A DNA stretch of 63,282 bases, filler included, from Reticulomyxa filosa (Eukaryota; Protista; Foraminifera): NCBI GenBank assembly GCA_000512085.1. It is 20 parts of 20 records of this genome, joined end to end, with 100 filler letters (N's around TTAATTAATTAA, not from the genome) between each part and the next. Parts side by side here need not be neighbours in the genome. Positions count along the whole stretch, not along the records: positions 20,486 to 27,485 come from ASPP01003472.1; 19 more parts are not named here. One strand, 5' to 3'. The notes under the pieces are model-generated. The model worked only from the letters and a program-made list of their open reading frames with translations, had not been told where the DNA came from and did not search any database. Positions within the stretch are counted from its first letter, which is position 1, and each line of letters begins with the position of its first letter. Shown here in pieces: positions 20,512 through 24,166 of the stretch. The translations under genes and the position numbers were made by a program.

Positions 20512-22100
20512 AAATTCGAGCACAAGAGCACCACATTGGGCGGTTTGGCAGCAAAATTTAATGTGTACTTGCCTCCAATGGTTAGATTTGCATTTATACA
20601 ATTTGTTTTTGCTTGATCAATGATGACAAGCCTCCTTTCTCCTCCCCCCTTTCTTTATGTGCCACGTAATGAAAAACATATCAACGGAAAAAAAAAAAAA
20701 AAGGGTCCGAACAGTGTAAAGAAATTTCCAATATTATATTTCTTGGCAGGACTGACATCGAATGAAGACAACTTCATGATCAAAGCTGGCGCACAACGAG
20801 TTAAGTGTCCGACCGTAAGATTTGTGTTTGTGCAAAAAGAGCAAAACGAGGAATGAAATGATTGTGTTGAAATGGTAAGTGCGCAAGTGAATGGGGATTG
20901 GCATTGGTGACCCCCGACACATCTCCGCGAGGCGCAAAGATCGAAGGAGAGGACAAAGACTGGGACTTTGGTGTTGGTGCAGGGTTTTATGTGAATGCAA
21001 CGAAGCAACCGTGGCAGCAACATTATCAAATGTACGACTATGTCACCAAAGAGCTACCCAATTTGATTGCCACGCAAATGTACTCTTTCACTGACGACGA
21101 CATCAAACAGGTCAAACAAGAGTACTTACCTTTGGATACTAACAATGTGGGCGGTACGTGGATATACTTTTGATTACACGTATACACTCCCCCCTTTTTT
21201 TTATTTTTATTTTTATTTTGTTTAGTTTAATGATATTTGAAGAACACGTAAAAGGATTTGTGTGATTGACTAACTGGTTTGAACACTATCAAAAAGTGTG
21301 TGGACACAGTATGGGTGGTCACGGCGCATTGGTTGCTTTCTTACGTAATCCTACTTTGTATAAAGTTAAGCTTCAATAGCGAAAGATACACTTTTTTTTT
21401 CTTTTCCCCCCCCCCCTTTTTTTTTAAAAAAAAAGTTGTTTTGCAAAATAATTGTAATCTCATCCATTTTAAATTAAACAGTACTTTTTTTTTTTTTTAT
21501 AATAAAATGTCTTTATAATTTTTTGCTGCAGTCAGTCAGCGCATTTTCGCCAATCTGCAACCCTACGCAGTGTCGATGGGGCCAAAAGGCCTTCCGTGGC
21601 TACTTGGGAGATGACGTGGAGGCTTGGAAACGATATGACGCTACCGAATTAGCGTCAAAGTATTCTGGCCGAAAGGACTTTGAAATATTGATCGATCAAG
21701 TCTCTACACGCAACATTAACTTATAATTTCTATAATCCACGCTTGTTGTACGCTGCGAGTTCTAATCTATGTTTTTGTTTGGTATTTTGTCTTATAACCT
21801 TAAAAAGGGCACTGCAGACCAATTCTTGATCGACGGACAAGACAAACACGACCAATTGCGACTTGATAGCTTTATAAAAGCCTGTGAACAAGCCGTTGCG
21901 TAACAGCTATATTTAAACCAATCACCCTTGTCTTATCACTTATTTTTTTTAACATTTGTTTGTTTGTATGTTGTATTTTGTGGTAAAAGAATATAAAATT
22001 GAAATACAGATCGCAACAAGGTTATGGCCATGGTTATGATTTCATTTCCACTTTTATCAATGATCACATTGAACATCATGCAAAGTTTTGTTTGCAATGA
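20512..22100 (+). CDS. ESD: S-formylglutathione hydrolase (esterase D); multi-exon, 5'-partial; probably the N-half of a fusion
   Basis: [52 protein letters not shown] (Ser), DQ/GTADQFL (Asp) and [22 protein letters not shown] (His). Confidence 0.95.
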
Positions 22101-22354
22101 CCTTTTTTTCCACTACTCTCACAAATATGCAAAGGTAACATTGGAATGGGAGGGAGGAGAACCAACTTCAATTTTTAATGTTTGACTCATCACAAAATAG
22201 GGTTTTAGGCTGCAAACAATATCAACAAGTTGGTACTGTTACCACAAAGAGTTAACACTTTGCATATACGCAACTTTTCTATCTTTTTTTTTTTTTAAAT
22301 GTACTACAACGCAAAGGTGTCCACACATAAACATATGTTATGCTCGCTTTATAG

Positions 22355-24166
22355 GTACCAACAGAACAACCAAGAAAAAAGAGTTGGGAGTTGAGAAAAC
22401 ACAAGGGAAGACAATTAAATGCAAAGCTGCCGTGGCCTGGAAGCCATGGGATGAAAAGACAAAGGAGCCCTTAAGTTGAGTGAGTCCCGTTTACAATGTC
22501 GAAAATATGGAGTCAGTGCAACAAAAGCTTTTTTCCTCAAAAAAAAAAAAAAAAAAAGAAATTGAAGAGATTGAAGTTGCACCACCAAAAGACAACGAGG
22601 TTCGAGTGAAAAATTTGTACACAGGTACAAGAACATTAGTCTCTTTTTCTGCTTTCTAAATTTGTCCTGTTGTTAATTGTATTGTCGTCTTTTTTTAAAT
22701 ATTTTTTGCTTGGTTTCAATTTTGTTACGCTGCTTTGGCAAACACAAAAACATAGGAGTTTGTCATACTGATTGGTATACATTGAGTGGCAAAGACCCCG
22801 AAGGCGTATTCCCTTGCATTTTGGGGCATGAAGGTTGTTCGATTGTGGAGTCAGTTGGAAAAAATGTACAGTCAGTAAAGCCTGGAGATGTTGTCATTCC
22901 ACTTTATATCCCTGAGTGTTATGAATGCAAATATTGCAAATCAGGTTTGTACAAGGCTTTCACTTTCACACAACTGTTTATAATATATATACATATATAT
23001 ATTTGTGTACATTTTATGGTAGTATGCATATCTTTTTGAGACAATTCAAAAAAAAAAAAAAAAATGAATGGAAAAAAGGCAAAACCAACCTATGTCAAGC
23101 CGTACGTACAACCCAAGGCAAAGGCCTGATGCCTGATAATAGTGTGCGTTACAAGTGCAAAGATAAAGACATTTTCCATTTTATGGTATGAATGTTGACA
23201 ATACAAACAACACTCCACAAAAAAAAAAAAAAAAAAAAAATCCCATGTCAAATGCATGGCTCTATTTTATTGCTTGTGTGATACAAAACTAGGGCACAAG
23301 CACATTTAGTCAATATAGTGTCGTACCCGAAATATCAGTGGCGAAGATTGATCCTTCAATACTCGACAAGAATTTGGAAAAAGAAGCGTGTCTACTGGGC
23401 TGTGGAGTGACCACAGGAATTGGAGCCGCTCGCACAACCATGAAAGTGACTCCCGGATCTACCGTTGCTATTTTTGGATTAGGTGGGGTGGGATTGTCGG
23501 CTATTCAAGGTTGCAAAATAAATGGCGCAAAAAGAATTATTGGAATTGACACAAATCCTATCAAATTTGACATTGGTTCGCAAAAAAAAAAAAAAAAAAG
23601 AAGATAGTTTTCTTTTCTTAAATAAGATAAAACAAAATAAAAAAAATTAAAGCAAAAAAAAATGGGTGCAACGGATGTGGTAAACCCAAATGATTTTCCT
23701 AATAAAACAATTCAAAATGTGATTGTTGAAATGACTGATGGCGGAGTTGACTATTCCTTTGAATGCATTGGTCTGACAGAGACTATGCGTGCTGCTTTGG
23801 AGTGTTGTCATAAAGGATGGGGAGAATCTTGTGTTATTGGAGTGGCAGCAAGTGGGGAAGAAATTCGCACAAAACCCTTTATGCTGGTGACTGGACGCGT
23901 TTGGCGTGGCTCTGCTTTTGGAGGAACCAAAGGCCGAAGTGGAGTTCCGGCAATTGCGGAAGAGTTCTTGGACGGAAAAATTGACATTACCTCAATGGTC
24001 ACTGATGTGGTTCCATTGTCTAAAATTAATCATGCTTTTCATTTGATGAAACAAAAAGACAAATTAAGGTGTGCATTCATGATTTTTTTTTTCCCTTGGA
24101 TTTTTTGAACATTAATGGTTGTGCATTGTACATAGCATTCGCACAGTCGTTGATTTGTGGAAATAA
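22355..24166 (+). CDS. ADH5: S-(hydroxymethyl)glutathione dehydrogenase (class III ADH/FALDH), multi-exon
   Basis: [83 protein letters not shown] and [14 protein letters not shown]. Last exon 24136-24166. Confidence 0.96.

Follow-up and report, generated by a model that had tools for sequence, protein, structure and literature searches.

Whether S-formylglutathione hydrolase (SFGH) and class III alcohol dehydrogenase / formaldehyde dehydrogenase (FALDH) of the foraminiferan Reticulomyxa filosa (Rhizaria) are encoded as a single fused protein or as two closely packed genes is the question raised by contig ASPP01003472.1, on which the two enzymes lie side by side. The whole of this 7000-nt contig was analysed as positions 20,486–27,485 of the window, that is, of the entire 63,282-nt stretch of DNA under study, filler included; all coordinates given below are those of the window. 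All homology searches were run exon by exon, and joined spliced models were used for frame arithmetic alone. A preliminary description of this DNA had proposed an SFGH-FALDH fusion of the diatom type in a rhizarian host, with a micro-exon joining the two halves and a possible splice switch. The host is indeed a rhizarian, and the fusion is, in our judgement, plausible and unproven.

SFGH and FALDH as a tandem pair

SFGH and FALDH were confirmed to form a tight tandem pair in R. filosa. Both genes are on the + strand, with SFGH preceding FALDH (22355–24166, +), and the 254 nt that separate them (22101–22354) contain no other gene. In the ~2.6 kb located 3' of FALDH, the NCBI annotation has no gene and none of the three longest ORFs matched a Pfam family. 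The part of the locus that is present contains six introns in SFGH and six in FALDH, and GT/AG is the only feature common to all 12 confident introns of the contig. The NCBI annotation represents the locus as separate fragments, and exact look-ups of the R. filosa SFGH and FALDH ORFs returned the NCBI contig as their sole carrier.

We identified seven SFGH exons, all on the + strand. The 5' end of the gene is cut by the contig edge, which leaves ~18–20 N-terminal residues outside. The first exon present (20512–20580) aligns, in its frame-3 translation (...YLPPM), with residues ~19–40 of SFGH homologues; the C-terminus is complete. The next exon (20704–20799) was found by tblastn with the SFGH homologues P0019 and P0031 and has the same donor in the NCBI model ETO33348.1. 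It is followed by the exon with the PDTSPRG and DWDFG core (20880–21153; TIGR02821, 103.8 bits; residues 71–133 of human ESD, 3fcx), which also includes a lineage-specific insertion of ~20 residues before GHSMGG. The nucleophile motif GHSMGG itself is encoded by the exon at 21297–21364 (tblastn and joined frame check), and the catalytic Asp region by an exon ending in LIDQ (21532–21699; TIGR02821, 64.6 bits, and tblastn). The exon at 21808–21894 was placed by frame continuity, its length being equal to that of the matching P0031 segment. The last exon (21990–22100), aligned with human ESD, carries the catalytic His motif GYGHGY and ends with HHAKFCLQ and a stop codon, as the preliminary description had stated. 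This stop (22098–22100) is at the canonical C-terminus, the last exon corresponding to residues 249–279 of the 282-residue human ESD. Every SFGH exon tested matched both Pfam Esterase (PF00756) and NCBIfam TIGR02821, the latter being the only such family for all three of them (103.8, 64.6 and 34.4 bits, values per exon, the cut-off of 281.7 bits being for the whole protein). The catalytic-triad motifs, GYGHGY included, align with P0019, P0031 and human ESD; from general knowledge of esterase D, we take the GHSMGG Ser, the Asp and the C-terminal His to be the SFGH catalytic triad.

FALDH likewise consists of seven + strand exons. The first conserved one (22355–22474) starts in phase 1 with 15 hydrophilic codons, includes an A6 run (22375–22380) and had no family-model match; its residues 15–30 align with residues 2–17 of solved ADH chains. 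Exon 2 (22559–22624) was detected by tblastn with bacterial FALDH and by an N-terminal profile (22.3 bits). Exon 3 (22756–22944; TIGR02818, 101.3 bits; 77% identity to bacterial FALDH) encodes VCHTD and GHEG, which hold the catalytic Zn ligands, together with the first part of the structural Zn site, exon 4 (23079–23185; TIGR02818, 44.8 bits) was also found by tblastn with bacterial FALDH, and exon 5 (23293–23575; TIGR02818, 117.2 bits; PDB ADH chains, E ~1e-29) contains the NAD-binding GLGGVG. Exon 6 (23653–24068; TIGR02818, 202.2 bits) assigns FALDH to class III rather than to class I, II or P, with 163.7 bits for human class III ADH5 versus 127 bits for class I; exon 5 alone cannot separate the classes. 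The last exon (24136–24166, with the stop codon at 24164–24166) was placed by frame continuity. Exons 3–6 match ADH_N / ADH_zinc_N and TIGR02818, the model for class III alcohol dehydrogenase / S-(hydroxymethyl)glutathione dehydrogenase; TIGR02818 ranks first among the families in each of the four FALDH exons with a match. The motifs VCHTD, GHEG, LLGCG, the four-Cys cluster and GLGGVG align with bacterial FALDH, and presumably have the Zn-ligand and NAD-binding roles generally known for the family.

These exon-by-exon matches to TIGR02821 and TIGR02818 bear out the enzyme identities and the head-to-tail arrangement on one contig given in the preliminary description. Judged by their sequence, SFGH and FALDH of R. 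filosa both look functional and belong to the glutathione-dependent pathway of formaldehyde oxidation. Each half matches its human counterpart (ESD, 3fcx, and ADH5, 1m6h) lengthwise, with the same boundaries at the SFGH C-terminus and at the N-terminus of the FALDH core. In contrast to the human enzymes, R. filosa FALDH lacks a Met at that boundary and has a 15-codon extension, and its SFGH has the ~20-residue insertion.

Start and reading frame of FALDH

As assembled, FALDH has neither a Met at the canonical N-terminus nor an uninterrupted frame. The exon at 22355 follows an acceptor AG at 22353–54, and its phase-1 frame is open back to 22201 with no ATG, in agreement with the preliminary description, which had noted a first exon without an in-frame start. 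A Lys is found at the position of the initiator Met in solved ADH chains, preceded by 15 more in-frame hydrophilic codons bounded by the AG; this extension looks like a linker.

The frame is interrupted at an A9 run (23654–23662, +) at the start of exon 6. The joint between exons 5 and 6 is 1 nt out of frame as assembled, and no combination of GT..AG sites holds the frame across it. Reading A8 instead of A9 restores KFDI-AKKMGATD and yields an intact reading of 398 codons. The NCBI gene models split FALDH in two at this run. The 1-nt break had been overlooked in the preliminary description.

Fusion or separate genes

The gap at 22101–22354 (+), characterized by its composition and by route enumeration, may belong to a fused gene as an intron, or may be intergenic DNA or the 5' region of FALDH. 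With a GC content of 34% and a T13 run, it is comparable to the 12 confident introns. The genomic frame from SFGH to FALDH is broken by the stop at 22098–22100, and a fused mRNA frame requires a splice. Near the end of SFGH there are just two GT dinucleotides, at 22085 (phase 2) and 22090 (phase 1). With GT/AG as the sole splice requirement, enumeration gave 18 in-frame routes from SFGH to FALDH, four of them direct and 14 with one micro-exon.

One of the latter is the route previously put forward, which joins 22084 to a hypothetical 32-nt micro-exon (22201–22232, +) and on to 22355. This joint is in frame (HHAK-VLGCKQYQQVG-TNRTT, model M1), and comes from frame arithmetic alone; under the stand-alone model, the same 32 nt would form the 3' end of a putative first FALDH coding exon at 22178–22232. 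At least one micro-exon route was present in 97% of trials with shuffled gaps. Because shuffled gaps so readily supply such routes, the micro-exon route is no better than chance and carries no evidential weight. Likewise, the splice switch between free and fused SFGH, as originally drawn, has frame arithmetic as its basis, which chance readily supplies, and is speculative.

The direct intron GT22090..AG22354 joins both frames without a micro-exon, the phases matching exactly; given two GTs in that part of SFGH, there is roughly an even chance of a suitable phase in one of them. The count of direct routes stands outside the shuffle test, in which the SFGH donor and the acceptor AG were kept unshuffled. 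Neither this direct intron nor the starts at ATG22178 and ATG22127 considered below appear in the preliminary description. A stretch resembling the FALDH N-terminus (22129–22182) was considered as a relic exon and rejected (tblastn E 0.56; only 2.2 bits with the N-terminal profile).

The most likely single reading, which we hold tentatively, is that SFGH and FALDH are co-transcribed and that splicing joins them, giving a single SFGH-FALDH protein with a length of ~700 residues. The two genes would be transcribed together and a single 265-nt intron removed, from the donor GT22090, 9 nt before the SFGH stop, to the acceptor AG22353–54. The product would comprise the SFGH end HHAKFC, a 14-residue hydrophilic linker and then FALDH. 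If the intron were retained, translation would end at 22100 and free SFGH might be made. The tight spacing, the SFGH-to-FALDH order and the missing canonical FALDH start fit a fused or co-transcribed unit, the 254 nt between the genes being set against the ~2.6 kb without an annotated gene 3' of FALDH. This much of the earlier case for a fusion stands. On the other side, the SFGH stop codon is kept at its canonical C-terminus, as in a separate gene; in-frame routes are expected by chance and a start at ATG22178 is equally open; NCBI has separate fragments; the A-run frame error means that the FALDH start could be lost; and no fused relative was found among the best 150 representatives or the best 120 of 8000 profile candidates.

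It is rather unlikely, in our estimate, that the two are separate, tightly packed genes, with the first coding exon of FALDH inside the gap and SFGH ending at its own stop, which is indeed canonical. In the simplest form, translation of FALDH would start at ATG22178 (22178–22180, +; protein start MFDSSQNRVLG, model M3), the exon would extend to 22232, and a 122-nt intron (22233–22354) would lead to the exon at 22355, so that the N-terminus would be extended by 33 residues (MFDSSQNRVLGCKQYQQVG-TNRTT...). In a variant form, an 8-nt coding exon would begin at ATG22127. From either ATG, 22178 or 22127, the frame stays open into FALDH with every base as assembled, and the splice sites (donor GTACTG, acceptor TTATAG) are like the confident ones. 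In addition, a stand-alone 282-residue SFGH is present in the stramenopile Aplanochytrium, so the genes are not fused throughout the larger assemblage to which Rhizaria belong. However, the stretch between the SFGH stop and the FALDH ATG would be only 77 nt long (26 nt in the variant form). It would have to hold a 3' UTR and poly(A) site as well as a promoter and 5' UTR, for which there is almost no space, in a contig that otherwise has few genes. Moreover, shuffled gaps gave a direct ATG-started route by chance in 79% of trials and one with a single extra exon in 47%, and cytosolic FALDH does not usually carry a long extension at its N-terminus.

Since the contig contains one A-run frame error, the FALDH start may have been lost behind another. 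If the A6 run at 22375–22380 were really A5, an ORF would run unspliced from ATG22299 into FALDH (MYYNAKVSTHKH...) and the genes would be separate, a very unlikely arrangement in our view. The corrected reading from ATG22299 is open (model M5), the 1-nt error in the A9 run of the same contig is clear, and this start with a corrected A-run is the case that the preliminary description had itself named as refuting a fusion. Nevertheless, the assembly would need to have erred again, this time in a shorter run, and the other exonic A6 (22859) keeps the frame. The segment 22299–22354 adjoins the T13 run and has an intron-like GC content, and the same A5 correction also puts the direct splice 22085->22355 in frame (model M5b), so A5 by itself does not exclude a fusion. 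Finally, a decaying FALDH pseudogene, or a remnant of an older fusion in which the A9 frameshift and the missing start are real, would account for the lack of a canonical start and for a frame that no GT..AG choice can hold from exon 5 into exon 6, but it is most improbable given ~398 codons open apart from one base, the retention of all Zn-ligand and cofactor motifs, 55–77% identity to the bacterial enzyme with close human matches, GT..AG at all six FALDH introns, and the fact that such a break is more commonly explained by an isolated error in a run of nine bases.

Known fusions, bacterial pairs and relatives

Fusions of these two enzymes in both orders are known from the literature, as the preliminary description had stated. 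PMC3143110, with reference to Stover et al. 2005 (Mol Biol Evol 22:1539), reports an SFGH-FALDH fusion gene in diatoms and a FALDH-SFGH fusion, in the reverse order, in ciliates (Tetrahymena FSF1, EAR92957). The diatom fusion involves the same enzymes in the same order as in R. filosa, SFGH N-terminal and FALDH C-terminal, and also occurs in the stramenopile-alveolate-rhizarian assemblage; in diatoms it is reported as one predicted protein, whereas in R. filosa a stop is present at the canonical SFGH end and a fusion would require removal of an intron. The ciliate fusion, from the same account, joins the two enzymes by a short linker with FALDH first, unlike R. filosa.

In bacteria the FALDH and SFGH genes of this one pathway are likewise neighbours, but their order is the opposite: all 25 of the 25 linked pairs from metagenomes have FALDH followed by SFGH, as separate ORFs, while R. 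filosa has the diatom-type order claimed for it. The best solved-structure matches of the two R. filosa halves are human ESD and human ADH5. Because of this opposite order, the six introns in each gene and these best structures, an imported bacterial operon appears unlikely as the source of the adjacency.

A real fusion would make Rhizaria, along with diatoms and ciliates, a third lineage in which these consecutive enzymes have been joined, and the case for repeated selection of S-formylglutathione channelling between SFGH and FALDH would be stronger. A stop kept inside the joining intron would then show a fusion arising via read-through and splicing before loss of the upstream stop. That this third-lineage fusion evolved independently, with the SFGH stop spliced out and one locus supplying both free SFGH and a bifunctional enzyme, is unlikely; if true, the fusion would have been caught at the stage where a former intergenic spacer became an intron. 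Without a real fusion, the locus would be a tandem pair of the ordinary kind, in a draft assembly affected by homopolymer errors, and the main use of the analysis would be to correct three fragmentary public gene models.

In a search of representatives with SFGH exon 3 (20880–21153), there was no fused protein among the best 150; the only near-identical match was the R. filosa fragment ETO33348.1, followed by a Closterium protein with 59% identity. A profile search with the Closterium scaffold and the R. filosa SFGH exons against a collection of 5.8 billion clusters, limited to 276–877 residues, revealed no two-domain or R. filosa-like protein among the best 120 of 8000 candidates; among the matches listed, the best identities to R. 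filosa SFGH were about 62–68%, lamprey proteins included. No foraminiferan orthologue was present among the best 150 representatives or the best 120 of the 8000, other lineages dominating both lists. The corresponding profile of bacterial FALDH and the R. filosa exons matched mostly relatives of Dyella and Rhodanobacter, and was uninformative. A metagenome scan with SFGH exon 3 found no locus in SFGH-then-FALDH order; one locus with a reported 86% (L121) belongs to a GC-rich unrelated eukaryote. Another metagenomic locus (L119) encodes a ciliate-code FALDH-SFGH fusion in a single ORF of 697 residues.

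The SFGH and FALDH genes of contig ASPP01003472.1

Window positions 20486-27485 make up the entire 7000-nt contig ASPP01003472.1 of Reticulomyxa filosa (GCA_000512085.1), a freshwater foraminiferan; the preliminary description had rightly guessed a rhizarian host. Placement by tblastn, with two SFGH homologues and one bacterial FALDH as queries, followed by a frame check, revealed seven exons of the S-formylglutathione hydrolase gene (SFGH; 20512-20580, 20704-20799, 20880-21153, 21297-21364, 21532-21699, 21808-21894 and 21990-22100) and seven exons of the class III alcohol dehydrogenase/formaldehyde dehydrogenase gene (FALDH; 22355-22474, 22559-22624, 22756-22944, 23079-23185, 23293-23575, 23653-24068 and 24136-24166), all on the plus strand. 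Family and homologue searches were run exon by exon, and joined exon models were translated for frame checks alone. The 12 confident introns of the two genes are 67-167 nt long with a GC content of 16-38%; most contain long homopolymer runs, and they have little in common beyond GT...AG.

The N-terminal 18-20 residues of SFGH are missing, as they lie past the contig edge. Each SFGH exon tested matched a single family, the NCBIfam SFGH/esterase D model TIGR02821; human esterase D is nearest to the core of the protein, which retains the nucleophile motif GHSMGG as well as the Asp and His regions. A lineage-specific insertion of ~20 residues (21086-21153) precedes GHSMGG. The human enzyme has 282 residues; the last exon aligns with its residues 249-279 and then runs three further codons to a TGA, so the stop (22098-22100) is located exactly where a free-standing SFGH would end. 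For FALDH, the NCBIfam class III model TIGR02818 was the best family for every exon that gave a match, the first exon having none among the family models, and exon 6 scored 163.7 bits to human class III ADH5 versus 127 to class I. The zinc ligands, the four-Cys structural site and GLGGVG are retained. The N-terminal strand carries a lineage-specific insertion of ~5 residues (22441-22474; counterpart WEAGKPL).

All four NCBI models on this contig are fragmentary. ETO33348.1 ("S-formylglutathione hydrolase", 157 residues) and a 271-residue ADH_N protein both start within introns, and they are accompanied by a 148-residue ADH_zinc_N protein and, at the far end of the contig, by an unrelated minus-strand gene without a Pfam match (26819-27485). 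None of these models annotates a fusion at the locus, and exact look-ups found the SFGH/FALDH ORFs in no record besides the NCBI contig. The ~2.6 kb 3' of FALDH (24167-26800) contains no gene annotated by NCBI, and its three longest ORFs matched no Pfam family. At 26527-26616 it holds an A/G-rich tandem array of period 7, with about 12 copies.

The frame break in FALDH

FALDH exon 5 extends to 23575, where it ends in phase 1. The sole usable acceptor puts exon 6 one base off frame; all AGs between these exons were tried, and each meets a stop. Exon 6 has an A9 run at its start (23654-23662); shortening this to A8 restores an intact reading of 398 codons, with KFDI-AKKMGATD in agreement with ...WEMAKALGATD of a homologue. 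The split of FALDH into two NCBI genes coincides with the same run. The contig therefore appears to hold at least one homopolymer miscount, which weakens any argument from a single missing ATG.

Relatives and gene order

Among the metagenomic loci recovered in a scan with SFGH exon 3, FALDH is followed by SFGH in all 25 linked cases, and the order SFGH then FALDH occurs in none of them. Given this order, the abundance of spliceosomal introns in both R. filosa genes and their closest similarity to eukaryotic enzymes, recent import of an operon does not account for the adjacency. One AT-rich locus (L119, Ga0307389_10035326, positions 1-2154), read in the ciliate code, encodes FALDH then SFGH in one 697-residue ORF, a natural example of a fusion in the reverse order to the R. 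filosa pair. The fusions in diatoms and ciliates invoked earlier are indeed reported in PMC3143110. The SFGH of the stramenopile Aplanochytrium is a complete, stand-alone protein of 282 residues, so the diatom fusion is not general even within stramenopiles, and a Reticulomyxa fusion, if real, is more likely to be independent in origin.

In a representative search with SFGH exon 3, the matches listed comprised a public R. filosa fragment followed by proteins of at most 59-72% identity, none of them longer than 501 residues. A profile favouring R. filosa-like SFGH of 276-877 residues likewise yielded, among the matches listed, no full-length R. filosa protein or two-domain protein. The EukProt entry for the vampyrellid Leptophrys vorax (P0390/P0277) clusters at ≥90% with Closterium-like SFGH and is probably derived from algal prey in the transcriptome, not from a rhizarian gene. 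Two SFGH models of Closterium sp. NIES-65 (P0002 and P0271; 501 and 523 residues) have exon blocks that occur more than once, which likely reflects mis-prediction or tandem duplication of exons in that assembly.

The junction between SFGH and FALDH

The two genes are separated by 254 nt. From its residue 15 on, the first conserved FALDH exon aligns with residues 2-17 of solved ADH chains, with Lys at the position of their initiator Met. Fifteen additional in-frame codons, hydrophilic and linker-like, extend back to the AG at 22353-54, and the frame stays open back to 22201 without any ATG. In frame 3, positions 22129-22182 of the gap encode AKVTLEWEGGEPTSIFNV, a peptide similar to the start of FALDH (tblastn E 0.56). 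It scores just 2.2 bits against an N-terminal profile and is thus probably a chance likeness, not a relic exon.

We consider the SFGH-FALDH fusion suggested in the preliminary description to have slightly less than an even chance. A fused or co-transcribed unit is favoured by the extreme spacing in a gene-poor contig, a gene order different from the bacterial one, the lack of a Met at the canonical FALDH boundary, the linker-like extension behind the acceptor and the fusion of this enzyme pair twice elsewhere; it is disfavoured by the canonical stop kept in SFGH, the existence of unfused FALDH starts, the assembly error nearby and the absence of a fused relative among the protein matches listed. 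Frame compatibility carries no weight, because the numbers of GT/AG routes across the gap (introns of at least 60 nt) are unremarkable against shuffled gaps. There are 4 direct routes from SFGH to FALDH, for which the donor and the acceptor AG stayed unshuffled and no null share applies; 14 routes through one micro-exon (at least one in 97% of shuffles); 5 direct ATG-started routes (79%); and 8 ATG-started routes with one internal exon (47%). The 32-nt micro-exon originally proposed (GT22085..AG22200, exon 22201-22232, GT22233..AG22354) is thus arithmetically correct but uninformative, given the 97% share. A simpler fusion would splice out one 265-nt intron (GT22090..AG22354), giving ...HHAKFC-TNRTT... 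at the cost of only the last two residues of SFGH. The suggested "splice switch" follows from any fusion route, since intron retention reaches the SFGH stop; its actual use or regulation is pure conjecture.

Separate genes, with the FALDH start inside the gap, are a rather unlikely arrangement, for which a route is open without any base change: 22178-22232, beginning with ATG, joined across an intron at 22233-22354, yields a stand-alone FALDH. It is improbable that the start is concealed by an A-run error. The case that had been named as refuting the fusion, ATG22299 with an A6 run read as A5, is indeed open, but the same correction equally brings the fusing splice from 22085 to 22355 into frame. 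Least probable, and very much so, is a FALDH pseudogene, in which the break at the A9 run would reflect a dying gene, a less likely cause than a homopolymer miscount.
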